This document shows positions 1 to 48,286 of a stretch of 64,000 nt of DNA, in pieces. The translations under genes and the position numbers were made by a program. The DNA is from Mytilus trossulus. Its lineage: Eukaryota. Position 1 is the stretch's first letter; each line of letters begins with the position of its first letter. Under the pieces are notes generated by a model, which worked only from the letters and a program-made list of their open reading frames with translations, ran no database searches and was not told where the DNA came from. The stretch spans positions 620,001-684,000 of the forward strand of contig NW_026963309.1 of assembly GCF_036588685.1 (NCBI RefSeq), in the 5' to 3' direction.

Positions 1-852
1 ACTGAAACCTCTACCACACACATCACAATCATGAGGTTTATCTCTAGTATGTGTTCTCTCGTTTATTTTTAGGTGATTACCTCCAGAAAATTCTCTAGGA
101 CAAAAATCCCATTTGCGAGGTTTTTCACCAGTATGTGTTTTCGTGTGTCTCTTTAAGGAACTACTGTGACTAAATTCTCTAGCACAAACATCACATTTAT
201 GTAGTTTATTACTATCCTGTGTTCTTATTTGTTCCTGTTGAGTACCATTAATTGTGACTAAATCCTCTGTTCTTATTTGTCCCTGTTGAGTACAATTAAT
301 TGTGACTAAATCCTCTGTTCTTATTTGTCCCTGTTGAGTACCATAAATTGTGACTAAATCTTGTGTTCTTATTTGTCCCTGTTGAGTTCCATTAATTGTG
401 ACTAAATCCTCTGTTCTTATTTGTCCCTGTTGAGTATCAATAATTGTGACTAAATCCTCTGTTCCTATTTGTCCCTGCTGAGTATCATTAATTGTGACTA
501 AATCCTCTGTTCGTATTTGTCCCTGTTGAGTACCATTAATTGTGACTAAATCTTCTGTTCTTATTTGTCCCTGTTGAGTACCATTAATTGTGACTAAATC
601 CTCTGTTCTTATTTGTCCCTGTTGAGTACCATTAATTGTGACTAAATCCTCTGTTCTTATTTGTCCCTGTTGAGTACCATTTATTGTGACTAAACCCTCT
701 GTTCTTATTTGTCCCTGTTGAGTGCCATTAATTGTGACTAAATCTTCTACCTCGTACATCCTATTAATAAGGTTTACCTCCAGCATATGTGTTTGTTCGT
801 GTATGTCTCTGTAAGGAAAAAATGAAGACTTAAATATATGTTTTGTAGACAT
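1..852 (-). CDS. C2H2 zinc-finger protein, paralogue 1 (5' part; continues off the window's left edge)
   Basis: Near-identical to 12960-13763: ATG at 852, 11 copies of the 48-bp repeat, then fingers CDVCAREFSHSSSLKRH, WDFC..., CDVCGRGF. Missing from the ORF track because its stop lies outside the window. Confidence 0.85.
   Translation of the reverse strand, partial: MSTKHIFKSSFFPYRDIHEQTHMLEVNLINRMYEVEDLVTINGTQQGQIRTEGLVTINGTQQGQIRTEDLVTINGTQQGQIRTEDLVTINGTQQGQIRTEDLVTINGTQQGQIRTEDLVTINDTQQGQIGTEDLVTIIDTQQGQIRTEDLVTINGTQQGQIRTQDLVTIYGTQQGQIRTEDLVTINCTQQGQIRTEDLVTINGTQQEQIRTQDSNKLHKCDVCAREFSHSSSLKRHTKTHTGEKPRKWDFCPREFSGGNHLKINERTHTRDKPHDCDVCGRGFS
218..748 (-). repeat. 48-bp coding minisatellite, 11 copies (EDLVTINGTQQGQIRT)
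   Basis: Unit (plus strand) tgttcttatttgtccctgttgagtaccattaattgtgactaaatcctc, counted directly. Confidence 0.9.
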
Positions 853-5001: not shown

Positions 5002-5990
5002 TAAACGGGAATGTGTTCATGAGACACAGATGATGCCCCGCTTGCATATCATTTAAAGTTATAAAAGAACTTACTGAAGAACGGTTAAAGTGATGCAGCT
5101 CAAATATGTACTGCATCATAGTTTTGTATGTGTATAAGTTTCATAACATTTGGTTAAGGCAAACTTAAGTTAAAGAACGGAAACGAAAAATTCAGCAATT
5201 TGTCCATGTGTAAAGGGGCATAACTCTAAAACAGTAAAAGTGACGCCAACAAAATTCAAACTTGATCTGTATGTTGTGGAAATAAGCATTATGTATAAGT
5301 TTAATAACATTTGGTTGAGGCTTACTTAAGTTAGAGAATTGAAACGAAAAACTCAGCATTTTTTTCATTTGTAAAGGAGCATAACTCTAGAAGAGTTATC
5401 GTAACAACACCATCGAAATTGATCCGTGTTTTGTGGTAATAAGCATTTTGTACAAATTTCATAACATTTGGTTGAGGCTAACTTAAGTTAGAGAACGAAA
5501 ACGAAAAATTCAGCAATTTGTATACGACCGCAAAAATTTAAAAAAAAATGGTCGTATATTAGTATCACGTAGTCGTCGTCGTCGGCGTCAGCGTCGTCCG
5601 AAGACAGATGGTTTCCGGATAATAACTTTAGTATAAGGCAATAGAAACCAATAAGTTTTAACGCAAGGTTTGTAACCACTAAAGAAAGATTTGGATTGAT
5701 TTTAGGGGTTATGGTCCTAACAGTTTAGGAACTATTGGCCAAAAAGAGGCCCGAATAGGCATTTTTCTAGTTTGCAGACAATAACGTGTGTTAAAGTGTA
5801 TGGATCTCTCTGAAATTATACCACAAGTTTCCATACCACAAAGGGATGGTTAGGAATGGCTTTCGGGGTTATGGTTCAATCCATTTAGGAATTAGGGTAA
5901 AAAAAAAGGAAAAAAAGGGGGAAACAAGGGTTTCTTGGTTAATGGACAATTAAGACAATTTGAAAGCAGTGTTAGGGAGGTAATCTAAAA
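5002..5990. mobile_element. Two nested Helentron/Helitron-associated non-autonomous elements with ~160-bp internal tandem units
   Basis: Repeated units (aagtttcataacatttggttgaggc...aaaggggcataactct), a (GTC)n tract and a terminal hairpin tatacgacc...ggtcgtata. Related sequence at 47497-48286. Confidence 0.6.
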
Positions 5991-8415: not shown

Positions 8416-11400
8416 TTTATCCTGCAATTGGGTGTCCTACTATACAGATACAGCCCTACAGATATCTATGGAACGCCATAGCTGTCTTATGTGTCTTTTT
8501 TATTGCTTTTCTATTATAAGATGGTGCTTTTCTATTATAAGATGGTGGTTTTCTATTATAAGATGATGGTTTTCTATTATAAGATGGTGCTTTTCTATTA
8601 TAAGATGATGGTTTTCTATTATAAGATGGTGCTTTTCTATTATAAGATGGTGGTTTTCTATTATAAGATGATGGTTTTCTATTATAAGATGGTGCTTTTC
8701 TATTATAAGATGATGGTTTTCTATTATAAGATGGTGCTTTTCTATTATAAGATGGTGCTTTTCTATTATAAGATGGTGCTTTTCTATTTTAAGATGAAGG
8801 TTTTCTATTATAAGATGGTGCTTTTCTATTATAAGATGGTGGTTTTCTGTTAAACTTATAAGGTGCTTTTCTATTATAAGGTGCTTTTCTATTATAAGGT
8901 GCTTTTTTATTATAAGGTGGTTTTCTATTATAAGGTGGTTTTCTATTATAAGGTGCTTTTCTATTATAAGGTGCTTTTTTATTATAAGGTGCTTTTCTAT
9001 TATAAGGTGCTTTTCTATTATAAGGTGCTTTTTTATTAACCCCCAGGGGTATAAATGTGCATTTCATTAATAAATAAATAAATAAAATAAATTAATAAAA
9101 ACTTTGAGCTCAAAATATTGACTTGAGTAAGTTCACCAGCACACTATTAGACCTGATATATACAAATTCAAATTCTTTATTAACTTTGAGCCTTACGGCT
9201 CATCAGTATAATCAATTACATGTACAATGTATACATATGGCATATTACAAACAATATAAACAATACGCATAATAAACAATAGATGACGTCAGAAGTTTCA
9301 GCAATACAAACTATCTTTTATTACAATAAACTGTTTCTTAATTTAAAAGAGAAATGTATATATTTTCCCAAGTTATACAAATATAAAACATTTATTACAT
9401 GTATTTAATTAGATTACAGTTACTATCTAATTTTGACACCTGTCGTAATCACTAATCAAGCAAATAATCATGTCATTTAAGTTTTCACACCTGAGACATC
9501 AAATACATTTACTAAAAAAAAAAAGTAATTGAATTAACTTATATAATCAGATGGCAATCAGAATCCAAACAAAGATAACAGTGAATTGAACTTTTTATTA
9601 AAGAATGCCAAAACTGGCTCTCTCTTTTTTTTAAAGATAAAACTAGATAGCTGACATGGATTAAATTAAAGTGAGACCACCAATATGCCGGTATCAAATC
9701 ATTTGAAAAAACAACAACAATGTATTCCAATATGACCTTTAACATCGAAGAAGTAAACTTGCATTCAGTCGTGTTCAGACACTTTACAATAGAAAATAAA
9801 GGACGGGCATCGAACACAAAGTTACTTTTGTATAATACTGCACTGTCACTAACTAGTCTGTCACTATATTTAAATTTAAAATTGAGGCAAAATATATTCA
9901 CCATTCGGTGAGGGGTCTGGCGGTAGCTCAAGACCCCCAGAAGCCTTGAAAAAAAATACGCAAAATCGTGCATCCCGAGAGCTTCTCGGACTCTTAGGAG
10001 GCACATTATTTGAGTGTCCTTTCCCTTGGAACCTCAGTCTCCAAAAACAACAAAACACCAGCCAGGTTAAAGACATCAGCCAAGTTGAAAACACCAGCCA
10101 AGTTAAAAAATACCTCAGTCAAAACAGAAAGGTTGTATAAACACCGAAATCTACTAAGATTGAGGTATGCTGATAATGGCAGTCAAGATCATCAGATACT
10201 TCTTACTGACAGTCAAACCTTCTGTGAAGAAAGACAATCCTGTTAATATATTTAAAACCAAAGACCTAAAATACAATTATAGATGTGCGAATCTCTTCAT
10301 GTATCATACATGTCTCTGTTAAACACATCGGCGAATGTGAATTCAGTCCGGTCAACTTTTTTAGCAGAAACATATTTTTTTTTACTATAAATTTATATTT
10401 TCGTATAATTTGTTTTTAAATCTCACAGATTCCTGAATTACTTGGACAAATATTGTCAAAGATATTAACACTTGTTGTCGACAAGTTGAATATATGTACA
10501 GCGTATAACGACGAGTGTGAATACCGTCCGGTCAACTTTATTTGCTCAAAAATATTTTTTTTTTCACTTATTTTGTTTGATTTTCATAAAATATATTTTA
10601 ATATCTTTAAGGTCTACAAATATTAAACCAATCTACCGAATAACAAAAAAGTTATTACTATTTATATCTCGTCCGGTAAACCGTCCTGTCACTATCCGGA
10701 CAATCGTCTTGTCATTAGTGGTTCCCCACACTCCCGGTTAATCACGGGAACCACCATCACATAATAAAAAAGCACCTTATAATAGAAAAGCACCTTATAA
10801 TAGAAAACCACCTTATAATAAAAAAGCACCTTATAATAGAAAACCACCATCTTATAATAGAAAAGCACCATCTTATAATAGAAAAGCACCATCTTATAAT
10901 AGAAAAGCACCATCTTATAATAGAAAAGCACCATCTTATAATAGAAAACCATCATCTTATAATAGAAAAGCACCATCTTATAATAGAAAACCATCATCTT
11001 ATAATAGAAAAGCACCATCTTATAATAGAAAAGCACCATCTTATAATAGAAAAGCAATAAAAAAGACACATAAGACAGCTATGGCGTTCCATAGATATCG
11101 CTATGCTGTATCTGTATACTATACAGATATCGCTTTAAAGCTCCGCCCACTGCCGGATTGAGTATTGTTTGAACCTGTGTGACCTCAGAATGTGTATTCC
11201 CGTTGCATTCCAATGAGCGATGACAATTGTCGATTTCAAAACTTGAATGTGTATGATTGTGTTACAAAATCAACCATGTCAATTTCAGCATGCATGTATA
11301 GTGAAATTCCGTGTCAAGTCTGAAGCATAGGACAACTTGTACACTTCAAATTCAAATTGGACAATGTTTTGTTATTTGTTTTTACTATTGAAATTAGTTG

Positions 11401-11760
11401 TTATGTTAAAATAGATAATTATTCACATTGCGATGTATTATTACTGACCATTCGAGATTATTTTTTTGCGAACCCTTCTTCAGCGTAATGTGTGATTTTG
11501 ATATTACTACGCGGGCCTCAAGGGTTCAAAAAATCGAAAATAAATGCTAAATATGTTAGTTTTTGTGTCTTTCAAAACTGAAACAATATACAGAATTAAT
11601 TGCAGGATAAAGACAATAACTGTTTAGTGTCTTTAAATATCAGCTGTATATGTACTCGGCTCGAAACAGGTGTAGTAGCTCGCTAAAAGCTCGCATACAC
11701 CTTGTTTCCTAGCCTCGTACAAATACAGCTGATATTGAAAGACACTAAACAGTTATTGTC
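8416..11760. mobile_element. Asymmetric hairpin-ended non-autonomous element (Crypton-like) inserted at the ZNF2 stop codon
   Basis: Absent at the equivalent site in paralogues 3 and 4. TTTATCCTGCAATT at 8416 is inverted at 11598-11611, followed by a ~150-bp hairpin at 11612-11760. Confidence 0.65.
8466..11094. mobile_element. Foldback-type DNA element with long TIRs built from 21-bp and 18-bp tandem repeats
   Basis: CTATGGAACGCCATAGCTGTCTTATGTGTC at 8466, exact reverse complement ending at 11094. Arms of (TTTTCTATTATAAGATGGTGC)n then (TTTTCTATTATAAGGTGC)n. Flanks are consistent with an ATAT or TA TSD. Confidence 0.85.
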
Positions 11761-13763
11761 TATATATCCCAGTCACGTGGTTTATCAGTATTATCATCAA
11801 CTGTATGTGTTCTCATGTGAACCTGTAAAATGTCAGGCCGACTAAAAATTTTACCACATACATCACAGTCATAAGGATTATCACCTGTATGTATTCTCTT
11901 GTGAGTCTTTAAATTACCTTGCACACTAAATCCTTTACCACATACATCACAGTCATAAGGTTTATCACCTGTATGTATTATCATGTGTCTTTGTAAATTT
12001 TGATGGCCACTCAATCCTTTACCACATATATCACAATAATGAAGTGAAGCACCTGAATGTGTTCTGGCGTGTCTCAGTAAAGTATAATGATGACCAAACC
12101 CTTTACCACATACATCACATTTATGACGTTTTTCGCCAGTGTGTGTTACCATGTGCCTCTTTACGTCACCAGCCGCACTAAACCTTTTACCACATACATC
12201 ACAGTCATAAGGTTTATCACCTTTATGTATTCTCATGTGTGTCTTTAAATTATCTTGCGCACTAAATCCTTTACCACATACATCACATCCATAAGGTTTG
12301 TCACCTGTATGTGTTCTCATGTGTCGCTGTAAATTACTAGACGTATTAAACCCTTTCTCACATACATCACATTTATGACGTTTTTCGCCAATGTGTGTTG
12401 CCATGTGTCTCTTCACGTCATTACCATGCCTAAACCTTTTACCACATACATCACAGTCATAAGGTTTATCATCTGTATGTATTCTCATGTGTGTCTTTAA
12501 ATTACCTTGCTCAATAAATCCTTTACCACATACATCACAGTTATGAGGTTTGTCGCCTGTATGTGTTCTCATGTGTCTACGTAAATGACTGAGTCGGCTA
12601 AACCCTTTACCACATACATCACAATCATGAGGTTTATCTTTAGTATGTGTTCTCTCGTGTATATCACCATTATGTATTCTCATGTGTTTCTTAAAATAAC
12701 CTTGATCACTAAATCCTTTACCACATACATCACAGTCATAAGGTTTGTCACCTGTATGTGTTCGCATGTGTCTCTTTAAAGTACCAAGCTGACTAAACTG
12801 TTTACCACATACATCGCAGTCATAAGGTTTATCACCTGTATGTGTTCTCATGTGTCTCATTAAACTACCATGATGACTAAACCCTTTACCACATACATCA
12901 CAGTCATGAGGTTTGTCGCCTGTATGTATTCTCATGTGTCTACGTAAATGACTAAGCAGACTAAAACCTCTACCACACACATCACAATCATGAGGTTTAT
13001 CTTTAGTATGTGTTCTCTCGTTTATTTTTAGGTGATTACCTCCAGAAAATTCTCTAGGACAAAAATCCCATTTGCGAGGTTTTTCACCAGTATGTGTTTT
13101 CGTGTGTCTCTTTAAGGAACTACTGTGACTAAATTCTCTAGCACAAACATCACATTTATGCAGTTTATTACTATCCTCTGTTCCTATTTGTCCCTGTTGA
13201 GTACCATAAATTGTGACTAAATCCTCTGTTCTTATTTGTCCTTGTTGAGTACCATTAATTGTGACTAAATCCTCTGTTCCTATTTGTCCCTGGTGAGTAC
13301 CATTAATTGTGACTAAATCCTCTGTTCCTATTTGTCCCTGTTGAGTACCATAAATTGTGACTAAATCCTCTGTTCTTATTTGTCCTTGTTGAGTACCATT
13401 AATTGTGACTAAATCCTCTGTTCCTATTTGTCCCTGGTGAGTACCATTAATTGTGACTAAATTCTCTGTTCTTATTTGTCCCTGTTGAGTACCATTAATT
13501 GCGACTAAATCCTCTGTTCTTATTTGTCCCTGTTGAGTACCATTAATTGTGACTAAATCCTCTGTTCTTATTTGTCCCTGTTGAGTACCATTAATTGTGA
13601 CTAAACCCTCTGTTCTTATTTGTCCCTGTTGAGTACCATTAATTGTGACTAAATCTTCTACCTCGTACATCCTATTAATAAGGTTTACCTCCAGTATATC
13701 TGTTTGTTCGTGTATGTCTCTGTAAGGAAAAAATGAAGACTTAAATATATGTTTTGTAGACAT
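11760..13763 (-). CDS. Tandem C2H2 zinc-finger protein, paralogue 2 (10 x 16-aa repeat + 16 finger units, the second degenerate)
   Basis: 667-aa ORF with repeated CxxC-x12-HxxxH and TGDKPY-type linkers. Probably a terminal exon with acceptor TTTTTTCCTTACAG (AG at 13721-13720). Confidence 0.93.
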   Translation of the reverse strand: MSTKHIFKSSFFPYRDIHEQTDILEVNLINRMYEVEDLVTINGTQQGQIRTEGLVTINGTQQGQIRTEDLVTINGTQQGQIRTEDLVAINGTQQGQIRTENLVTINGTHQGQIGTEDLVTINGTQQGQIRTEDLVTIYGTQQGQIGTEDLVTINGTHQGQIGTEDLVTINGTQQGQIRTEDLVTIYGTQQGQIGTEDSNKLHKCDVCAREFSHSSSLKRHTKTHTGEKPRKWDFCPREFSGGNHLKINERTHTKDKPHDCDVCGRGFSLLSHLRRHMRIHTGDKPHDCDVCGKGFSHHGSLMRHMRTHTGDKPYDCDVCGKQFSQLGTLKRHMRTHTGDKPYDCDVCGKGFSDQGYFKKHMRIHNGDIHERTHTKDKPHDCDVCGKGFSRLSHLRRHMRTHTGDKPHNCDVCGKGFIEQGNLKTHMRIHTDDKPYDCDVCGKRFRHGNDVKRHMATHIGEKRHKCDVCEKGFNTSSNLQRHMRTHTGDKPYGCDVCGKGFSAQDNLKTHMRIHKGDKPYDCDVCGKRFSAAGDVKRHMVTHTGEKRHKCDVCGKGFGHHYTLLRHARTHSGASLHYCDICGKGLSGHQNLQRHMIIHTGDKPYDCDVCGKGFSVQGNLKTHKRIHTGDNPYDCDVCGKIFSRPDILQVHMRTHTVDDNTDKPRDWDI
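13178..13657 (-). repeat. 48-bp coding minisatellite, 10 copies
   Basis: Ten 16-aa units in the ORF translation; units 5-7 and 8-10 form a duplicated triplet. Confidence 0.9.
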
Positions 13764-15436
13764 TGTTTAGGTGCAAAAATAAAGAGATCTTCAGGTTCTA
13801 GACGTTGTATGAATGTAAGTAAGTAAGTAAGTAAATTTTATTTAGAGTCGGCATATTAATTCATTTTTTATACATGATAACAGAGAAAACGTGAGCTCTG
13901 GTGAGCTCTTTATTAACCGACTATATGTGTACAAATTAAACTATAATGCGGCTGAGTTGTTATCTAATGTTTCGTAGCAGTTTGTTCCTGTAAGACCCAA
14001 ACATGCAGTTAATAAAAAAAGAATCTAGACTTTATTTTCGTTTCGTGTATCTAACTTTTGTTTTGGTAAATTATAAATTACTTATTGAAATATCAGGTTA
14101 CAAACCCGCATTAATAGCTTGGACAAAATGGCTACCGCTTGAAAAAACGACTGTGTAGAGATGGTTTTATAAAAGCTACATTTTTTGAACTCACGAACAA
14201 TGAGGCAAATGTTTGTTCTTTCGGTAGATGTTATTATTTTGTAAATAAACTCATAGATAAATAAGAGTCCACCTGGAAAATCAAAATAAGTGTTGTAAAT
14301 ATGGACTTAGAATGTAAAATTGAATTGTAACTTTGTCGTCAAAAATGTTATAACAATGTTGAACTTGCGCAAAGATATGAAGAGGTACATGACAACAAAA
14401 TAGCATTTCATCATCAAAACAGAAAAGTCCTAAAATAAAACCAAAAGAACTGAATATAAAAAATGACATTTGTCATGTGCAACAAAGAAGGCTGTTGGTG
14501 CTTGATTGAGTCCTTAAAGTTTTATTTTTAAAATCATAAAAAAAACTATTTAAGTCTTAAAGACACCAAAGACAGGAACAGGTTGTTGCTTTAAACGAAG
14601 ATTCAACACACTTACGTTTTATCATTTAATTCCAAGCAGACAAAGAATAATTATACTTTATGAGTTTCTCCTTCAATCGGAGGAATAATCGTTTTTTAAT
14701 TACAATTAAAATGATGACTCCTGCCATGTGTCTGTATGTCTTTATTAATATGATAGCCATTCCAAGCTGGCAAAGAATAATACATTATGAGGTACTCCTT
14801 CGTTGGAGGAATATTCGTGTTAAATTTACAATTATGACTCCTACCTGCCAACTGTATCTATGTGTTTGTTGTATGTGTTTTTTACTAACATCCATAGCTT
14901 TATTTATACTGTATGTTGAAAACTAACAAAACTCAATAACATGACAATTTTTTTAGCAATACTCTAACTAAAACACATGTATAATTCGTAATCATAATTG
15001 AAAATCACATCATTAATTAATATGAAATTGTATTACTCATATTGTTTCATTCTTGCATATTTCCCTTTAACTTATTTTTCACACCTTGTATATGGATTAA
15101 AAATTGGATATCGTGTTTTTGTTTCAGATAAATAGATCACATCTTTGATTATTATTATAATTATAGTCTGAATTATATCCCCGTAAGCATTATATCTGAA
15201 GCTATAGGAATATTTAAAAAAAAAAAAAACATATAGACAATAGACAGAGATATTTGTACAAACACATTTACAATACATGGTTATGGCATACACCATTGAG
15301 ATAATAAACTGGCAATTATTAAATTTACTGTTATTAAAGATCATTAAATGAGAGTGACATGCATGTAGTGGTAGTCACACGAAAAAACAAGAGACTATAA
15401 AAACATGTGTGTATCTAGAGTTAACTCACCACCAAT

Positions 15437-15640
15437 GAGGGTCTGGATGGGGGGGTCTGTTTATCTGTCAACATTCAATTTTTACCCATCTAATCTTTAA
15501 AAAAAAAATAACCACTTTTTTCTCTTTTATTCAACAAATTAACCCCCTTTTTCTCTAATCTTCATTTTGTTTGGCCGTTATTCTGTAATCTTCATTTTTA
15601 AGGCATTATTCTTTAATCATTTAACCCCATCCAAACCCTC
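15437..15640. mobile_element. MITE with GAGGG termini and 6-bp TSD
   Basis: GAGGGTCTGGATGGGG / CCCCATCCAAACCCTC, flanked by ACCAAT/ATCAAT. Confidence 0.75.
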
Positions 15641-16248
15641 ATCAATGTTCATGAACAAAATAATTAACTAAAAAAAATAGTATACATATTAAAAATTCTC
15701 ACTAAGTAGAGGGGTATCTAAAAGCTATACTTAAGGTACGGTCATTGTTTATCAGCTGAAAAGCTGAAGGGTATGTTCAAATTTTTCACCACATAATGAC
15801 CCCCCCCCCCCCCCTCTTCTCCTTTACACATATTAGCTTCAAAACTTTGACCCCCAAACAAAAATCTCTATCGATTGTAAGAAGAAATTCTCAATTTAGT
15901 AGGATTTTCCCAGATCCCAGATAACATGGATAAGGGGTCTGTAGAAGCTAAACTTAATATAATTAACTTAGTATATGTTCTAAAGAGCAACAAAAACGGT
16001 GTGCAAGAGTATTAGATCTGAGTACAGAGGTAGTACATATAGGTATAAAGTTGAAAGGAAAGGGGGTTATTCTTTGATTTTTCGGGATGATGATTTTGAA
16101 AATGAATATCATATCCACATGTCCACTGAATAAAATAAGCATAACAGATGAAAATGAATATTGAATTTGGAAAATATTACTTCTGGTTCCCCAAATTATC
16201 AAATGGTCATCTAAGCCAAATTATTATGACGTCTTGACCATGTTGAAA

Positions 16249-16470
16249 GGCCAAATAAAAAAGTATGTGTGGTTCCAGTTATATCTGAAAAAAGTTAGGG
16301 TAGGTAGGTATAGGGATTTTTTTTTTTACATTGAGTCTATGGGAGCAACATTCTGACTTAAACAGTGCTTAATGAAAAATGACAATAAAATCTTTAGGGA
16401 AGGCTGTTTTTAAGCCAAAACAGTAGGGACGGTAGGGTTACTGGAACCACACATATATTTTTATTTGGCC
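16249..16470. mobile_element. MITE (GGCCAAATAAAAAA TIR, Zator-like)
   Basis: About 30-bp TIRs; absent from the duplicated site at ~34960. Confidence 0.75.
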
Positions 16471-18212
16471 AAAGGCTATCTTATTTTTTTCCTGTGACAC
16501 GTTCCTTTGGACTAACGGTTATCTTATTATTTTTCAATTTGTAAGCTATCTTATTTTTTTCTGCAACACCTTGCTTTCAAGCGGCACTAATGGTCATCTA
16601 ATTATTTGTCAATTTGTTATACTTTACATAAATAGGGAGACCTGCAATTACTTCACAATTTATAGGCTGTTTTGAAACATTTCACAGTACTTGCATTTGT
16701 TGAATCAGATGAATTACTACATTTTTACTAGGCATAATTTTAGTTGTACATGAGTACTGTCACCAGACTTTGACTCTATAAAAGAAAACTGGGAGAGTTA
16801 AATAGATTAGCTTCTGCATCTGACATGTCTGATACATCCATTTCATTTGAATGTCTTTTTTTCGAGAGTAAAATACATAAAACTCTGTATAAAATCATCA
16901 ATACCTCTCTCTATCTTCATATATCTAGATTTTTTGTGCATCCACGCAAGTGTGTCCACACCAGCCTCGTGTATATACATGCACCACAGAGAGTCAAATC
17001 GTTAACAAGCATACCACTGCCACTGCCCAGCTTAAAGCATCTTCCGAACATTTAAAAGTCCCTACCATGTACTGGTTACCGAAATTACACAAAAAAACAT
17101 TTAAATTCCGTTTCATCTCCGCTTCGAGTAAGTGTTCTACTACTAATCTATCAGTGCTTCTAACCACCTCCCTTACTACTATCAAAGAACTGGTTATTAA
17201 CTTTTGTAATAAAGCTTATGAAACTAATGGTATTAATTGTTTTTGGAGTGTTAAAAATTCTTTAGAGGTTTTAGATAAAATACATGCTTTCAATGGTCCT
17301 TACAATTCTGTTGACAGTTATGATTTTTCTACTCTGTAAACTACACTTCCACACAATCTTATAAAGAAAAAGTTTTTGTATTTGATAAAATGGTCTTTCG
17401 AAAAATCTCATTGTAATTTTATTTGCTGTAACTCGTTTAAGGCCTTTTTCTGTAACGAAAAAGGAAAGTATGCTAGATACACTTACTGGAAATGTGAGGA
17501 TATGATTGAAGCTTTAAACTTTCTGCTTGATAACATTTATGTACGTTTCGGCGATAAAGTGTATCGTCAGGTAGTAGGTATTCCTATGGGCACCAACTGT
17601 GCCCCTTTAATAGCAGATTTATTTCTATATTGCTATGAATCTCAGTTTATGACTAAACTCAGTAAAGACCCATCATTGTTACATTTGGTTGATACATTCA
17701 AAAATACCTACCGTTATCTGGATGATATTTTTTCGTTGAATAATCCAGAGTTCTCTAAATATACTTCAGAAATTTACCCAAACGAACTTACTTTAACTAA
17801 ATCTAACATAAACAGCAGCAGTTGTCCTTTTCTAGATTTAGACATTTCAATTTCAAACGGGAAACTTCACACTAAAATTTACGACAAAAGAGACGATTTT
17901 TCATTTCCTATTGTTAATTTTCCTTTTTTAGACGGCGATGTGCCTTTGGTTCCATCATACGGTGTTTATATATCGCAACTCGTTCGGTTTGCCCGTGTGT
18001 GTTCTGATGTCATAGATTTTAACGAACGTAATCAATGCATCACTGGTAAATTGTTGTGTCCCATAAATTACTTAAAACTTTTACTAAATTCTTTCATAGA
18101 TACAAAGATTTGATTAGTAAATTTGGCTATACCTGTAGAAAGCTTATTAAAAATGGTATTTCACATCCTAAATTTTATGGTAATATTGTACTTAAAGCGA
18201 GGAAATCACTAT

Positions 18213-24929: not shown

Positions 24930-25659
24930 GAATATGATACTAGGTGGTTTTGTCACCTTCATAAACATTTGCAATATCTACTGAAGAGTCCCGAGTACAA
25001 CTGGTTATTCATTCATACATAAAATTATGGACGAAACGCATAAGGCTAACTAGACCATACCCGCGACATGTCGCGGATCCTTGACTGAATTAAAGAACCT
25101 ACCCCTTAGTTTTAGCCTGGATTTTTAGAATTCGTATTTTCATTTGGTAAAGTCACGCTGATTATAAGATGCATAGATATTCCCTGTATAATGACGAATT
25201 TCAGGTGTGATTATTACCCGTGTTTATAGCAATTCTTCAATACACAATTTGGTTGTGAGCCTGACAGAGGCGGAATGTACAGATCATGTACAGGGATCAG
25301 GTAATTTTGTGAAATATACTATTGGAATCGGTATCTGATTCGACCCGCGACTTTTTAATTATTGGTAATGTTAATTATGTGGAAAACAAAAGGGCCTGAA
25401 ATGGTGTAATTTTTAATCTACACCATTGTCATATATTATTTATATATAAAGTTAAATTCTTCGTTCAGTACGTCGACTGAGCATGCGAAAGGCTATAAGA
25501 CACGGATCGATAACGGTCTCCGAATTTAGATATTTTCTCAAAAATTGTCATTTTCTGTGGGAAAAAAGACTGTTTCAAAAACAAATTTAGGAATTACAAA
25601 ACATTACATTTATACGTCATATCACAAATATTTCTGACTTTGTATGGTTTCAGAGGAGT

Positions 25660-26290
25660 TTTTAGATAATAAGGACATACTATGTAGATGTGCATATTGA
25701 CAGGAAATTATGATTCAATTTTGTTTAGGAGTTGCGCCCACTTGAACTTATTTGCCCCAATATACTATTGCAACAGTTTGTCATCGCAACTCCTCAGAAA
25801 CCACACAACAGAATTTCATGAAACCTCTTTAGACATTAAGGACATACTATGTAGATGTGCATATGGACAGGAAATTATGATTAAATGTTTTTTCTAGGAG
25901 TTATGCCCCTTTGAACTTATTTGCACCAATATACTACTGCAACAGTTTGTCATCTCAACTCCTCTGAAATCACACAACAGAATTTCATGAAACTTTGTAG
26001 ATAATAAGGACATACTATGTAGATGAACATATCGACAGGGAATTATGATTCCAATTTTTTTTCTATGAGTTTTTCCCCTTTGAACTTATTTGCCTCAATA
26101 TACTAATGCAATAGTTTGTCATCAAAATTCCTCTGAAACATCACAACAGAATTTCATGAAACTTTTTAGATAATATGGACATACTATGTGGATGTGCTTA
26201 TTGACAGGAAATTATGATTCATTTTTTTATTTGTCCAGTGACAATGTAGGGGCGTGGGGTATGTGAGCGCGCTCACTAAGGTTCTTTAAT
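25660..26290. repeat. ~165-bp tandem satellite-like units of a Helentron-type element fragment
   Basis: Four recurrences of aggacatactatgtagatg...acaggaaattatgatt; terminal palindrome GTGAGCGCGCTCAC. Confidence 0.65.
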
Positions 26291-30104: not shown

Positions 30105-31832
30105 TTATAAATCCCAGTCACGTGGTTTATCAGTATTATCATCAACTGTATGTGTTCTCATGTGAACCTGTAAAATGTCAGGCCGACTAAAAACTTTACC
30201 ACATACATCACAGTCATAAGGATTATCACCTGTATGTATTCTCTTGTGAGTCTTTAAATTACCTTGCACACTAAATCCTTTACCACATACATCACAGACA
30301 TAAGGTTTATCACCTGTATGTATTATCATGTGTCTTTGTAAATTATGATGGCTTCTCAATCCTTTACCACATATATCACAATAATGAAGTGAAGCACCTG
30401 AATGGGTTCTGGCGTGTCTCAGTAAAGTATAATGATGACCAAACCCTTTACCACATACATCACATTTATGAAGTTTTTCGCCAGTGTGTGTTACCATGTG
30501 TCTCTTTACGTCACCAGCCGCACTAAACCTTTTACCACATACATCACAGTCATAAGGTTTATCACCTTTATGTATTCTCTTGTGTGTCTTTAAATTATCT
30601 TGCGCACTAAATCCTTTACCACATACATCACAGTCATAAGGTTTGTCACCTGTATGTGTTCTCATGTGTCGCTGTAAATTACTAGACGTATTAAACCCTT
30701 TCTCACACACATCACATTTATGGCGTTTTTCGCTAGTGTGTGATGCCATGTGTCTCTTCACGTCATTACCATGCTTAAACCTTTTACCACATACATCACA
30801 GTCATAGAGTTTATCACCTGTATGTATTCTCATGTGTGTCTTTAAATTACCTTGCTCAATAAATCCTTTACCACATACATCACAGCCATGAGGTTTGTCG
30901 CCTGTATGTGTTCTCATGTGTCTACGTAAATGACTGAGTCGGCTAAACCCTTTACCACATACATCACAATCATGAGGTTTATCTTTAGTATGTGCTCTCT
31001 CGTTTATATCACTCTTATGTATTCTCATGTGAGTCTTTAAATAACCTTGTTCACTAAATCCTTTACCACATACACCACAGTCATAAGGTTTGTCGCCTGT
31101 GTGTGTTCTCATGTGTCTCTGCAAACTACTAAGCCGACTAAAACCTCTACCACATACATCACAGCCATGAGGTTTGTCGCCTGTATGTGTTCTCATGTGT
31201 CTACGTAAATGACTGAGTCGGCTAAACCCTTTTCCACATACATCACAATCATGAGGTTTATCTTTAGTATGTGTTCTCTCGTGTATTTTTAGGTTATAAC
31301 CTCGAAAAAATTCTCTATGACAAAAATCACATTTGTGACGTTTTCCATCAGTATGTGTTTTCATGTGTCTCTGTAAGTAGCCACTGTGACTAAATTCTCG
31401 AGCACAAACATCACATTTATGAAGCCTATTACCATCCTCTGTTCTTATTTGTCCCTGTTGAGTACCATTAATTGTGACTAAATCCTCTGTTCTTATTTGT
31501 CCCTGTTGAGTACCATTAATTGTGACTAAATCATCTGTTCTTATTTGTCCCTGTTGAGTACCATTGATTGTGACTAAATCCTCTGTTCTTATTTGTCCCT
31601 GTTGAGTACCATTAATTGTGACTAAATCCTCTGTTCTTATTTGTCCCTGTTGAGTACCATTAGTTGTGACTAAATCATCTGTTCTTATTTGTCCCTGTTG
31701 AGTATCATTAATTGGGACTAAATCATCTACCTCGTACATCCTATTAATAAGGTTGACCTCTAGTAAATGTGTTTGTTCTTGTACGTCTCTGTAAGTAAAA
31801 AATGAAGACTTAAGTATATGTTTTGTAGACAT
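30105..31832 (-). CDS. Tandem C2H2 zinc-finger protein, paralogue 3 (6 x 16-aa repeat + 15 fingers)
   Basis: 575-aa intact ORF, same architecture as paralogue 2. Confidence 0.93.
   Translation of the reverse strand: MSTKHILKSSFFTYRDVQEQTHLLEVNLINRMYEVDDLVPINDTQQGQIRTDDLVTTNGTQQGQIRTEDLVTINGTQQGQIRTEDLVTINGTQQGQIRTDDLVTINGTQQGQIRTEDLVTINGTQQGQIRTEDGNRLHKCDVCAREFSHSGYLQRHMKTHTDGKRHKCDFCHREFFRGYNLKIHERTHTKDKPHDCDVCGKGFSRLSHLRRHMRTHTGDKPHGCDVCGRGFSRLSSLQRHMRTHTGDKPYDCGVCGKGFSEQGYLKTHMRIHKSDINERAHTKDKPHDCDVCGKGFSRLSHLRRHMRTHTGDKPHGCDVCGKGFIEQGNLKTHMRIHTGDKLYDCDVCGKRFKHGNDVKRHMASHTSEKRHKCDVCEKGFNTSSNLQRHMRTHTGDKPYDCDVCGKGFSAQDNLKTHKRIHKGDKPYDCDVCGKRFSAAGDVKRHMVTHTGEKLHKCDVCGKGFGHHYTLLRHARTHSGASLHYCDICGKGLRSHHNLQRHMIIHTGDKPYVCDVCGKGFSVQGNLKTHKRIHTGDNPYDCDVCGKVFSRPDILQVHMRTHTVDDNTDKPRDWDL
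31440..31727 (-). repeat. 48-bp coding minisatellite, 6 copies
   Basis: Six 16-aa units in the translation. Confidence 0.9.
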
Positions 31833-35459: not shown

Positions 35460-37605
35460 CAGCCTCGTGTATATACATGCACCACAGAGAGTCAAATCGT
35501 TAACAAGCATACCACTGCCACTGCCCCGCTTAAAGCATCTTCCGAACATTTAAAAGTCCCTACCATGTACTGGTTACCGAAATTACACAAAAAAACATTT
35601 AAATTCCGTTTCATCTCCGCTTCGAGTAAGTGTTCTACTACTAATCTATCATTGCTTCTAACCACCTCCCTTACTACTATCAAAGAACTGGTTATTAACT
35701 TTTGTAATAAAGCTTATGAAAATAATGGTATTAATTATTTTTGGAGTGTAAAAAATTCTTTAGAGGTTTTAGATAAAATACATGCTTTCAATGGTCCTTA
35801 CAATTCTGTTGACAGTTATGATTTTTCTTCTCTGTAAACTACACTTCCACACAATCTTAATATAAAAAAAAAGTTTTTGTGTTTGATAAAATGGTTTTTC
35901 GAAAAATCTCATTGTAATTTTATTTGCTGTAACTCGTTTAAGGCCTTTTTCTGTAACGAAAAAGGAAAGTATGCTAGATACACTTACTGGAAATGTGAGG
36001 ATATGATTGAAGCTTTAAACTTTCTGCTTGATAACATTTATGTACGTTTCGGCGATAAAGTGTATCGTCAGGTAGTATGTATTCCTATGGGCACCAACGG
36101 TGCCCCTTTAATAGCAGATTTATTTCTATATTGCTATGAATCTCAGTTTATGACCAAACTCAGTAAAGACCCATCATTGTTACATTTGGTTGATACATTC
36201 AAAAATACCTACCGTTATCTGGATGATATTTTTTCGTTGAATAATCCAGAGTTCTCTAAATATACTTCAGAAATTTACCCAAACGAACTTACTTTAACTA
36301 AATCTAACATAAACAGCAGCAGTTGTCCTTTTCTAGATTTAGACATTTCAATTTCAAACGGGAAACTTCACACTAAAATTTACGACAAAAGAGACGATTT
36401 TTCATTTCCTTTTGTTAATTTTCCTTTTTTAGACGGCGATGTGCCTTTGGTTCCATCATACGGTGTTTATATATCGCAACTCGTTCGGTTTGCCCGTGTG
36501 TGTTCTGATGTCATAGATTTTAACGAACGTAATGAATGCATCACTGGTAAATTGTTGTGTCAGGGATTTCGATACCATAAATTACTTAAAACTTTTACTA
36601 AATTCTTTCATAGATACAAAGATTTGATTAGTAAATTTGGCTATACCTGTAGAAAGCTTATTAAAAATGGTATTTCACATCCTAAATTTTATGGTAATAT
36701 TGTACTTAAAGCGAGGAAATCACTATGTGATCCTTGTAAACTCATCGAACCTTTAAACAAACTTATAAGTAAGGGTTATCGTACCAATATTGTAATTAGA
36801 TCTCTGAATATATTTCACAGTATATGTCAGTAACTGCGAGTACTCTCAAATCGTATTTTCTTGTTAATTCGACCTGTTGATACTGTTTTATAATGCTTTT
36901 TTGTTATTTTTTCTATTTATATGGATCTTGTCTGTACACCAGCTTTGATTATTTGTAATATCTTCAATTTTTCACTTATTCTTACAACATTTGTAAAAAC
37001 TTCAAGATTATAAAAAAACGGTTTTTTTTCTAAAGTGAACTTTGATTGGTTAAATATTTCTCAGTTTTGTCCTGTGTTTGAATTTGTTTGTTAGCGTTTT
37101 GGTCATGAATGTTTGTCTCTAATATTTAATTAACTGTGCATTTGTATTCAGATATCGCAGATCAAATTTATTCGTTCATTGTGTAATCATACGTTTTTTT
37201 ATTGAGTTAAGTCTGCCAATTGATATTTTATCGTATGTTTTTCTATGTTGTGATGTTATGCTATTGTTTCAGAAAGAGGGAGAAGGTTTGGATCCATTAA
37301 AACGTTTAATCCCGCTGCAAATGTTTGCACCTGTCCTAAGTCAGGAATCTGATGTACAATAGTTGTCGTTTGTTTATGTAATATATACGTGTTTCTCGTT
37401 TCTCGTTTTGTTTATATAGATTAGACCGTTGGTTTCCCCGTTTGAATGGTTTTACACTAGTAATTTTTGGGGCCCTTTATAGCTTGTTGTTCGGTGTGAG
37501 CCAAGGCTCCGTGTTGAAGGCCGTACTTTAACCTTTAATGGTTTACTTTTTAAATTGTTATTTGGATGGAGAGTTGTCTCATTGGCACTCACACCACATC
37601 TTCCT
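35460..37605 (+). mobile_element. Duplicate 5'-truncated Penelope-like retroelement (RT pseudogene)
   Basis: ORFs 35448-35837 and 35877-36833 carry the same RT motifs and the same TAA nonsense codon. Confidence 0.85.
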
Positions 37606-41503: not shown

Positions 41504-43148
41504 TTATAAATCCCAGTCACGTGGTTTATCAGTATTATCATCAACTGTATGTGTTCTCATGTGAACCTGTAAAATGTCAGGCCGACTAAAAACTTTACCA
41601 CATACATCACAGTCATAAGGATTATCACCTGTATGTATTCTCTTGTGAGTCTTTAAATTACCTTGCACACTAAATCCTTTACCACATACATCACAGTCAT
41701 AAGGTTTATCACCTGTATGTATTATCATGTGTCTTTGTAAATTATGATGGCTTCTCAATCCTTTACCACATATATCACAATAATGAAGTGAAGCACCTGA
41801 ATGGGTTCTGGCGTGTCTCAGTAAAGTATAATGATGACCAAACCCTTTACCACATACATCACATTTATGAAGTTTTTCGCCAGTGTGTGTTACCATGTGT
41901 CTCTTTACGTCACCAGCCGCACTAAACCTTTTACCACATACATCACAGTCATAAGGTTTATCACCCTTTATGTATTCTCATGTGTGTCTTTAAATTATCT
42001 TGCGCACTAAATCCTTTACCACATACATCACAGTCATAAGGTTTGTCACCTGTATGTGTTCTCATGTGTCGCTGTAAATTACTAGACGTATTAAACCCTT
42101 TCTCACATACATCACATTTATGACGTTTTTCGCCAGTGTGTGTTATCATGTGTCTCTTCACGTCATTACCATGCTTAAACCTTTTACCACATACATCACA
42201 GTCATAGAGTTTATCACCCTTATGTGTTCTCATGTGAGTCATTAAATTACCTTGCTCAATAAATCCTTTACCACATACATCACAGCCATGAGGTTTGTCG
42301 CCTGTATGTGTTCTCATGTGTCTACGTAAATGACTGAGTCGGCTAAACCCTTTACCACATACATCACAATCATGAGGTTTATCTTTAGTATGTATTCTCT
42401 CGTGTATATCACTCTTATGTATTCTCATGTGAGTCTTTAAATAACCTTGCTCACTAAATCCTTTACCACATACACCACAGTCATAAGGTTTGTCGCCTGT
42501 GTGTGTTCTCATGTGTCTCTGCAAACTACTAAGCCGACTAAAACCTCTACCACATACATCACAATCATGAGGTTTATCTCCAGTATGTGTTCTCTCGTTT
42601 ATTTTTAGGTTATAACCTCGAAAAAATTCTCTATGACAAAAATCACATTTGTGACGTTTTCCATCAGTATGTGTTTTCATGTGTCTCTGTAAGTAGCCAC
42701 TGTGACTAAATTCTCGAGCACAAACATCACATTTATGAAGCCTATTACCATCCTCTGTTCTTATTTGTCCCTGTTGAGTACCATTAATTGTGACTAAATC
42801 CTCTGTTCTTATTTGTCCCTGTTGAGTACCATTAATTGTGACTAAATCATCTGTTCTTATTTGTCCCTGTTGAGTACCATTGATTGTGACTAAATCCTCT
42901 GTTCTTATTTGTCCCTGTTGAGTACCATTAATTGTGACTAAATCCTCTGTTCTTATTTGTCCCTGTTGAGTACCATTAGTTGTGACTAAATCATCTGTTC
43001 TTATTTGTCCCTGTTGAGTATCATTAATTGGGACTAAATCATCTACCTCGTACATCCTATTAATAAGGTTGACCTCTAGTAAATGTGTTTGTTCTTGTAC
43101 GTCTCTGTAAGTAAAAAATGAAGACTTAAGTATATGTTTTGTAGACAT
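41504..43148 (-). pseudogene. C2H2 zinc-finger paralogue 4 with a +1 frameshift after finger 9 (14 finger units in total)
   Basis: ORFs 41961-43148 and 41504-41896 together match paralogue 3. TCACCCTTTA at 41961-41970 versus TCACCTTTA in paralogues 2/3 shows one extra C, which could be a sequencing error. Confidence 0.75.
42756..43043 (-). repeat. 48-bp coding minisatellite, 6 copies
   Basis: Six 16-aa units, same as paralogue 3. Confidence 0.9.
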
Positions 43149-47496: not shown

Positions 47497-48286
47497 TTCA
47501 TTTGTAAAGGAGCAGAACTCTAGAAGAGTTATCGTAACAACACTTAAATTCGAAACTGATCCGTGTTTTGTGGTTATACGACCGCAAAAAATAGAAAGAA
47601 ATTGGTCGTATATTGGTATCACGTCGTCGTCGTCGTCGTCAGTGTCGTCCGAAGACAGATGGTTTCCGGATAATAACTTTAGTATAGGTCAATAGAAATC
47701 AATAAATTTTAACACAAGGTTCAGGGTTGGACCTCTGCGGTCGTACCAACTGCGCTGGGCAAAGCAATTTATTCTATTTGTTAAGGGGCATATTTACTCT
47801 AAAACAGTTAAAGTGACGACACTAAAACTCAAACTTGATATGTGTTTTGTGGTAATAAGCATAGTGTATAAATTTTCATAATATTTTGTAGAGGCTTACA
47901 ATAGTTAGAGAACGGAAACGAAAAATTCAGCAATTTTTCCATTTGTAAAGGGGCATAACTCTAGAACGACCGAAGTGAAGCCACCAAAATTCAACCTTGA
48001 TCTGTATTTTGTAGTAATAAGCATCGTGTATACGTTTCAATCATTTGGTTGAGGCAAACTAAAGTTAGAGAACGGAAACCAAAAATTAAGCATTTTTTTT
48101 CCATTTGTAGAGGGGCATTACTCTAGAATGGTTAAAGTGACGCCACCAAAATTCAAACTTGATCTGTATTTTAGGGTATTGTGTATAAGTTTCATAATTA
48201 AAGTTAGAGAACGGAAACCAAGTTGGGACGTACGGACGGACAAGGGTACAACTTAAATGCTCCCTACGCTACGACGGGGGCATAAA
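47497..48286 (+). mobile_element. Helentron-type non-autonomous element(s)
   Basis: ~160-bp units, GGAC tract, 3' hairpin ATGCTCCC...GGGGCAT; related to 5002-5990. Confidence 0.6.

Follow-up and report, generated by a model that had tools for sequence, protein, structure and literature searches.

Repeat arrays and their zinc-finger genes

The window analysed here, a stretch of 64,000 nucleotides from the mussel Mytilus trossulus (NCBI RefSeq assembly GCF_036588685.1, contig NW_026963309.1, positions 620,001 to 684,000 of the forward strand), holds four arrays of a 48-bp tandem repeat on its minus strand, each with a C2H2 zinc-finger gene. We consider it likely that the 16-residue repeat encoded by these arrays is the amplified N-terminal module of a mussel-specific C2H2 family, and that this module was made from a dead finger. 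The gene of main interest lies in an open frame of 667 residues at 11760..13763 (-), in which ten units of the EDLVTINGTQQGQIRT type are followed by EDSNKLHKCDVCAREFSH and then by the fingers, so that the original prediction, made by a model from the sequence alone, was right to place the array in the N-terminal part of a single frame ahead of the fingers. Within it, the proposed coding sequence (11760..13670 (-)) runs for 636 residues from a conserved ATG (MYEVEDLV...) to the stop and comprises ten 16-residue units and the C2H2 fingers. Tandem Repeats Finder, run on the window, places the array at 13173-13659, with 10.1 copies and 94% matches, and the ten 48-nucleotide units themselves span 13179..13658 (-); the first half of each is the old GFSH hairpin read in the +1 frame, while the old helix, still in its own frame, makes up the rest. 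The fingers, which follow in frame at 11763..13160 (-), include 15 strict C-x2-C-x12-H-x3-H fingers with HTGDKP linkers as well as degenerate ones, and they belong to the C2H2 (Krueppel-type) class according to Pfam (zf-C2H2, E = 5e-86 over 15 stretches; zf-H2C2_2, E = 3e-130). Both finger strings quoted in the original prediction, REFSH and KGFSHHGSLMRHMRT, are present in the gene.

The other three arrays of the window lie on the same strand, and all four show 94-96% matches. A sister array at 214-748 (-) has 11 units (11.1 copies), and the fingers of its gene run past the start of the window. Two further paralogues carry six units each: one, at 30105..31832 (-), has its array at 31434-31728 (6.1 copies) in an open frame of 575 residues, while the other, at 41961..43148 (-), has its array at 42750-43044 (6.1 copies) in a frame that stops early, inside the fingers, at 395 residues. 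This last copy may be a young pseudogene or may encode a shortened protein, given that its near-identical neighbour at 30105-31832 reaches 575 residues. A search of the 1.3-Gb genome with the flank and two units found a fifth array of 48-nucleotide units outside the window, at C5:61.035 Mb, with 27 units, as well as weaker matches that proved to be related arrays of other periods. The arrays thus behave as a coding minisatellite, or variable number of tandem repeats (VNTR), with head-to-tail units in numbers that differ between close copies: 11, 10, 6 and 6 for the arrays of the window, and 27 for the fifth array. Higher-order patterns of variants recur within the arrays, and all four arrays of the window are free of stops in the finger frame, while the other two sense frames are closed.

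Finger ancestry of the repeat

When the unit consensus was compared with the 15 fingers of the gene, the best local alignment was to the finger at residue 287, over 47 columns with one 4-nucleotide gap, and it recovered, unprompted, what had been proposed originally, namely a match between the 48-mer and the GFSH..RHMRT half of a finger in which the 48-mer has 4 extra nucleotides. Its score of 17 was reached by none of 2000 dinucleotide shuffles (mean 10.1, maximum 16), the observed mean score over the 15 fingers was reached by 6 of the 2000, and the reverse complement of the unit, used as a control, scored 8. For a comparison by nhmmer, nine two-finger stretches of the window gene itself were made into a DNA profile, and here the interior unit alone, given as three tandem consensus copies, could not be told from its shuffles (-2.1 bits, with 41 of 1000 shuffles scoring at least as high). 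The expected likeness of the 48-mer to finger DNA beyond that of shuffles was therefore borne out by local alignment but not by nhmmer on the interior unit, and the support that the interior 48-mer by itself seems to give to a finger origin is modest and depends on the method.

With the interior unit only, one could argue that the likeness to finger DNA reflects chance or shared composition and that the repeat derives from an unrelated element, since the nhmmer score is no better than that of shuffles and the margin of the local alignment is narrow (17 against 16). It is the flank together with the first unit, and not the interior unit, that decides the matter. In a region from -75 to +66 around the conserved ATG, nhmmer found matches in 11 of the 11 paralogues tested, at 9.9-34.7 bits, whereas none of 2200 dinucleotide shuffles exceeded 8.1 bits; for the flank plus first unit, the score was 34.5 bits. 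The aligned stretch covers the 49 bases ahead of the array as well as the start ATG and first unit, and it follows the order of a finger array: the end of a helix, the HTGDKPY linker, the DVCGKGFSH hairpin, a 4-nucleotide insertion and the next helix. All five nhmmer alignments that were printed are collinear with the profile in this way over up to 110 positions, from the helix and linker of one finger to the hairpin, insert and helix of the next, and the common insert, the score of 8 for the reverse complement and the in-frame LQRHINTHTGD of single-unit relatives (see below) likewise speak against coincidence. A chance likeness is accordingly very improbable, and for practical purposes it is refuted by the homology of the flank.

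The 4 extra bases lie at 13640..13643 (-) in the window gene, between ..AGTCACA and ATGG.., with a placement that is uncertain by a few bases, and every unit has them at an equivalent position. The insert state falls after AGTCAC(A) and before (A)TGG in the local alignment as well as in each of the five nhmmer alignments that were printed. In the other frame, the flank and unit read LQRHTRTNRYTGGKPY, two stop codons and DVRGRRFSHN (HTGDKPY.*DVRGRRGFSH as a pattern), which is the end of a helix with its linker, followed by a C-D-V-C-G-K-G-F-S-H hairpin that has a stop and an arginine where the cysteines were encoded; HTGDKPY.*DVRGRRGFSHNQ is present at all 11 loci. When an intact finger of the window gene is read from the equivalent ATG, it begins MYVVKGLV, and the gene begins MYEVEDLV. 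Because the frame opens one base inside GAT-GT and the 4 inserted bases are equivalent to +1, the helix returns to its old frame. Thus, two signs of a frameshift-derived coding sequence were found, namely homology to DNA that is read in another frame and an indel that is not a multiple of 3. The split of the unit into a shifted first part and an in-frame second part was described correctly in the body of the original prediction, but its title, which spoke of a frameshifted helix, was not: the hairpin half (DVCGKGFSH) is shifted and the helix half is in frame. The proposal that a dead finger fragment was amplified gains from the collinear flank, from the reading in the other frame and from single-unit paralogues that read LQRHINTHTGD...HKCDVC, and on these sequence comparisons we regard the finger origin of the repeat as secure, with little room for doubt.

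Likely start codon, leader and putative splice acceptor

The likely start codon, at 13668..13670 (-), lies within GATGT, the old Asp-Val codons of CDVC, one base off the old frame. All of the 10 paralogues that were aligned have this ATG, and nhmmer aligns it to gatgta in the profile. Upstream of it, a leader of 49 nucleotides (13671..13719 (-)) extends from a putative splice acceptor and corresponds to the remnant of a finger helix end and linker, which in the old frame reads RHTRTNRYTGGKPY followed by two stop codons. Among the ten aligned paralogues, the leader is 45-60 nucleotides long, its length is 0 or 1 modulo 3, it contains in-frame stops in three of the ten, and it differs by indels of 3, 4, 7, 9 and 18 nucleotides; after the ATG, length differences are only multiples of 3.

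The putative 3' splice site, a polypyrimidine run and CAG at 13720..13735 (-), is where the finger homology stops. A polypyrimidine run with YAG is kept in 10 of 10 paralogues, about 45-60 nucleotides before the ATG, and no finger homology was found upstream of the putative acceptor, either in the 1500 nucleotides of the window gene or in single-unit genes, with matches only where the upstream stretch itself held units. Since the finger homology ends at the YAG and RNA depth drops to zero just beyond it, the simplest reading would be that the exon starts at 13719, that the leader is 49 nucleotides long and that translation begins at 13670. The window gene has no Met between the array and the third finger, so that any protein with the first fingers must either read through the array or be entered by splicing.

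A wider family with separate amplifications

When the start of the N-terminal exon of a single-unit paralogue was used as a genome query, 144 matches were found at more than 40 places on C5 (60.3-61.04 Mb), C34, C3, C8, C10 and C11, and 41 loci were retrieved for comparison. The module is followed by 6-17 fingers in one open frame at 26 loci, and at 6 more; many of these are near-identical pairs between C34 and C5, so the number of distinct genes is smaller. The module is thus the common N-terminus of 30 or more loci, most of which have it only once, and although the original prediction was correct that four paralogues carry the repeat in the window, the module is not special to these four. 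At most loci, the single copy reads M-[LS]-E-G-G-E-D-L-V-T-x-N-G-T-L-Q-R-H-I-N-T-Q-A-[DG]-K-T-x-H-K-C-D-V-C, and from L-Q-R-H on, it has the exact length and many of the residues of a canonical helix, linker and next hairpin. Genes with one or two units read ..NGTLQRHINTQADKTRHKCDVC and ..LQRHINTHTGD.., with the canonical length of helix and linker (the two-unit gene, for instance, reads L-Q-R-H-I-N-T-H-T-G-D), and the closest single-unit relative of the 48-nucleotide lineage, L038, reads ...EDLVTINDTLPRHIRTETDNIRHKCEVC and retains the histidine. Because most loci hold the module once and a near-intact helix and linker are retained in frame, we take the single copy to be the older state.

The 16-residue array is one of at least four separate in-frame amplifications of the module, with units of 42, 48, 60 and 84 nucleotides. 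The 42-nucleotide unit is found at L035/L034, the 48-nucleotide unit in the window genes and at L044 (27 units), the 60-nucleotide unit, which takes in the ATG and 6 bases of the leader, at L030 (6 units), L028 (14), L032 (27) and L031 (36), and the 84-nucleotide unit at L043 (2 units). At the array loci listed here with these four unit lengths, the array is always in frame with the fingers that follow, and L034 is broken further on, in the fingers. There are also repeats of 91 and 93 nucleotides, about a whole finger period with insertions, which are out of frame or contain a stop, and their host genes look broken. The 60-nucleotide arrays are in addition open on the opposite strand, for 301-618 codons (RVPLSVTKSSPPSNILLCPC...), at L031 (C8:5646500-5653500), L032 (C11:13143500-13149500) and L028 (C5:60362550-60365732), which indicates that open frames come cheaply in repeats.

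The family loci on the 710-kb contig C34, from which the window is taken, pair one-to-one with near-identical loci at C5:60.33-61.04 Mb, in the same order and at a near-constant offset of about 60.33-60.43 Mb. Judging from this correspondence, C34 may be an alternative haplotype or a recent segmental copy of the C5 region. If so, the two versions differ in their 48-nucleotide genes, with four (11, 10, 6 and 6 units) on C34 against one (27 units) on C5.

Expression and constraint

In the stranded RNA run X21, reads cover 12600-13781 at a depth of 2-6, with the first mate on the plus strand only, which indicates RNA from the minus strand if the usual library type is assumed. Sense-strand RNA extends from the fingers through the array: the bin 13388-13584 has a depth of 6.0 and the bin 13585-13781 a depth of 2.25, the bin 13191-13387 is empty, as expected because reads there fit several units, and depth is 0 at 13782-13978. 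A second RNA run, X24, is weaker. RNA-seq, which the original prediction named as a check of translation, thus shows sense-strand RNA over the array, but no splice joint was observed. Two runs available as contigs, X1 and X5, look like DNA, and contigs of X5, a run labelled as another organism, include pieces of the array and of the junction between array and fingers with 2-5 differences. In X21, there are also four reads with a joint that goes back 472 nucleotides, from 13595 to 13124, and with 4 other differences; these probably represent a paralogue or a structural variant that exploits the residual likeness between the repeat and the EFSH codons of the first finger.

A sliding comparison was made of 13 single-unit genes, with genes that bear arrays, a pseudogene and two twins set aside, and it shows a block between about -30 and +90 that differs by only 0.07-0.15 per site. 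The 45-nucleotide leader differs by 0.323, and the first two fingers have a ratio of non-synonymous to synonymous differences per site (pN/pS) of 0.58, with a pS of 0.333 (n = 16). The module is therefore conserved at the nucleotide level, without visible constraint at the amino-acid level. Inside the arrays, variants fall on the three codon positions in numbers of 25, 24 and 26, the sole length variant counted is one of 3 nucleotides, and stops are fewer than expected (P = 0.018), a deficit that is partly circular, given that the frame was chosen for most units. It was claimed at the outset that the repeat had stayed free of stops in all four paralogues; the arrays are indeed open in the finger frame, but this is weak evidence for selection, as their variants look neutral.

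Several observations weigh against a translated N-terminal module born from a finger, besides the failure of the interior unit in the profile search. The open frame of the fourth window copy ends early, at 395 residues, and elsewhere in the family there are stops in the module or broken finger frames at L036, L037, L055, L063, L034 and L061. RNA depth is low, the paralogues are so alike (93-99%) that a read cannot be placed on one of them, and neither a splice joint nor a transcript start is resolved. No annotated protein with this N-terminus was found in protein searches. Among 75 unique variants in six arrays, 15 are synonymous, 60 non-synonymous and 0 stops, where 18.1, 52.9 and 3.9 would be expected, and for codons 2-21 of the module in 19 paralogues (twins above 97% identity removed), pN is 0.133 and pS 0.135, a ratio of 0.98. 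Conservation of nucleotides rather than residues would fit an RNA element, a translation-start element or gene conversion equally well, and it is also possible that too few sites were available.

These points lend some weight to a different explanation, in which the array is a non-coding minisatellite in a 5' untranslated region or an intron, open by chance, and the genes are either decaying or begin their protein at another place; the repeat would still come from a finger, but there would be no new domain. The variants within arrays and between paralogues that look neutral at the amino-acid level, the opposite-strand frame of the 60-nucleotide arrays that is open as well, the broken relatives, the missing database match and the low RNA depth are all consistent with it. 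On the other hand, without a Met between the array and the third finger, a protein with the first fingers needs read-through of the array or entry by splicing, the listed arrays of 42, 48, 60 and 84 nucleotides are all in frame with the fingers that follow, and length inside the arrays varied by 3 nucleotides in the only case counted. Furthermore, the ATG is invariant, while the leader just upstream tolerates indels of 4, 7 and 9 nucleotides as well as stops, and sense RNA spans both fingers and array. Taking both sides together, we think a non-coding array unlikely, although it is a serious competitor, and we lean towards translation of the array from the ATG at 13670.

A proposed origin

What is observed, from the homology and the indel to the open frames, the relatives with a single copy and the sense-strand RNA over the array, can be accommodated in a simple series of events, which we set out here as a proposal. 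In a founder finger, 4 bases would have been inserted between the hairpin (..GFSHN) and the helix (G-T-L-Q-R-H..); in most paralogues, the insertion site reads CAATCAAT, which suggests a tandem duplication of 4 bp. All that lies upstream would thereby have lost its frame, and of the two codons for the cysteines that bind zinc, one would have decayed to a stop and the other to an arginine codon. A new frame would have been opened by an ATG lying one base out of frame inside GAT-GT (Asp-Val of C-D-V-C), and it would read the old hairpin as M-x-E-(G-G)-E-D-L-V-T-I-N, with the old frame resuming past the 4 bases through the helix, the linker and all later fingers. The resulting module of roughly 25 residues would have stayed single-copy in most members of the family and would have been amplified in several of them by slippage or unequal exchange, with different boundaries each time. 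For instance, in the window gene, a 48-nucleotide piece bounded by GARGAT microhomology would have given 10 copies, and 6, 6, 11 and 27 in sister genes.

Clear base-by-base origins of new protein segments are rare, and here all stages survive in one genome: intact fingers, a single-copy chimeric module with a borrowed start codon, and independent amplifications of up to 36 copies. The family can thus be seen as a natural series in which to follow the pace at which a sequence born from a frameshift becomes constrained, to ask whether repeat amplification alone can create a foldable solenoid, and to trace the route by which finger families gain N-terminal partner domains.

Predicted structure and the bactofilin match

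AlphaFold2, given the N-terminal 202 residues as a single sequence, predicts an all-beta solenoid with a predicted local distance difference test score of 96-98 over the repeats and below 50 in the finger part. In an exhaustive structural alignment, this model superimposes on 3p4g, a bacterial beta-helical antifreeze repeat, with Z 17.3 and a root-mean-square deviation of 2.8 over 186 residues, and on the bactofilin BacA (2n3d) with Z 11.1 and a deviation of 2.0 over 95 residues. The Pfam profile Bactofilin (PF04519), whose gathering cut-off is 27.9, scores 48 bits on the window array and 95.9 bits on the 27-unit copy, the latter in 7 stretches over positions 10-92 of the 98 in the profile. 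It could be argued from these scores, and from the alignment to BacA, that the array shares its descent with the bactofilins, a polymer-forming family of bacteria, and that a true domain of this type was acquired from them. However, the DNA of the unit can be traced base by base to a zinc finger of its own gene family, which excludes common descent; the sister arrays with units of 20 residues have no match to PF04519, showing chance matches above the cut-offs of unrelated families instead; a PDB sequence search returned nothing relevant and no bactofilin; and Foldseek with the model against the PDB returned nothing at E <= 0.001, the weak matches being beta-helices and the bactofilin chain standing at E = 0.45. 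Bactofilin descent is thus contradicted by the finger ancestry, and we consider it exceedingly improbable. It follows that a Pfam match above threshold, such as the one to Bactofilin, can arise by convergence in repeats, which may serve as a warning for annotation.

What the structural model suggests is a convergent propensity of the array to form a beta-solenoid, not membership of the bactofilins. We treat this solenoid as a hypothesis because AlphaFold2 is unreliable on perfect repeats and because the ancestry is that of a finger; one report (PMC11795689) describes confident but unrealistic beta-solenoids predicted for perfect repeats. That the 16-residue repeat is actually a folded, bactofilin-like beta-solenoid, and that it gives the transcription factors of a Mytilus-specific family a new domain for self-association or an effector role, is on the strength of such a model a long shot. 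If true, it would be a dated birth of a protein fold from the DNA of another fold, traceable step by step, with the single-copy intermediate present in dozens of paralogues. By analogy with KRAB, SCAN, BTB and ZAD in other finger families, the array might more generally serve as an N-terminal protein-protein or self-association module, possibly as a beta-solenoid, a suggestion that we hold only tentatively and think rather doubtful; otherwise, it would be a tolerated, nearly neutral coding minisatellite.

Relation to known systems

KRAB, SCAN, BTB and ZAD are absent among the Pfam matches at E <= 0.01, both for the full protein and for its N-terminal 202 residues. The mussel module resembles these domains in being a lineage-restricted N-terminal module of a clustered, rapidly duplicating finger family, and it is unlike them in that it has no sequence match, arose from the finger array itself and has only a putative function. 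As for Bactofilin (PF04519) and 3p4g, the likeness to the mussel array lies in the Pfam score and the alignment of the predicted model, and it would be an analogy at most, the ancestry being that of a zinc finger. Coding minisatellites, or VNTRs, and unequal exchange in C2H2 finger arrays are well known, with PRDM9-type arrays as the textbook case. Like these, the mussel arrays consist of in-frame, head-to-tail units, and close copies vary in number (6, 6, 10, 11 and 27). Unlike a PRDM9-type finger, the mussel unit is, judging from its residues, not a finger and would bind no zinc, as both cysteines and, in the 48-nucleotide lineage, the histidine are lost.

Frameshifted readings of tandem-repeat proteins have been described by the Kajava group (FEBS J 2025, PMC12871928), including human ZNF781, in which one frame reads fingers and the annotated frame is a predicted solenoid. 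Such cases are like the mussel gene in that a shift of frame in finger repeat DNA yields another polypeptide, again repeat-like, for which a solenoid is predicted. The mussel gene is unlike them in that half of one finger is shifted and a 4-nucleotide insertion restores the old frame within that finger, so that each unit is chimeric. It also differs from them in taking its start codon from the shifted CDVC codons, in having a unit of 48 nucleotides (elsewhere 42, 60 or 84) rather than the 84-nucleotide finger period, and in heading a gene family. We found no account of the mussel module in the literature searched, although the supplementary lists of PMC12871928 might hold more finger examples. 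What is new with respect to known cases is the half-finger chimera, the start codon from shifted CDVC, the family-wide single-copy module and its repeated amplification with different units.

Among annotated proteins, a word-indexed search scored on residues 1-200 went through 8000 candidates with no match at E <= 0.001, no candidate at all was returned for the N-terminal 40 residues of a single-unit paralogue, and none of six versions of the window proteins was in the collection on exact look-up. An exhaustive search of representative proteins gave 94 matches at E <= 0.001, seven of which were examined; five of these seven are unrelated repeat proteins, and one, P0005 (NCBI VDI06060.1), a partial protein of 104 residues from Mytilus galloprovincialis with 65% identity, is a real relative, the only one found for the array. 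In P0005, stretches in the open frame (MYEVEDLVTINGTQQGQI) take turns with stretches in the old frame (YVRGREFSH, GTNKK), which suggests either that the gene model was stitched together from two frames or that the copy has indels that break its frame.

Other features of the window

Between the third and fourth paralogues, an open frame of 318 residues at 35877-36833 (+) contains the stretch YRYLDDIF and looks like a fragment of a retroelement reverse transcriptase, on the basis of its residues. Just 3' of the gene of main interest, there are two 21-bp minisatellites, at 8504-9038 (26.6 copies) and 10752-11056 (15.1 copies), whose units are reverse complements of each other and which lie about 1.7 kb apart; they may be the ends of a mobile element. 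RNA is found on both strands at 15555-15751 and 16146-16539, at a depth of up to 33, far above that of the gene, with many loose ends and fixed differences, and it likely comes from a dispersed repeat expressed from elsewhere. Finally, tandem repeats with periods of 161-169 bp occur at 5131-5521, 25659-26228 and 47762-48172, two of them with related consensus units, and they probably belong to a satellite or to a repeat inside a mobile element.

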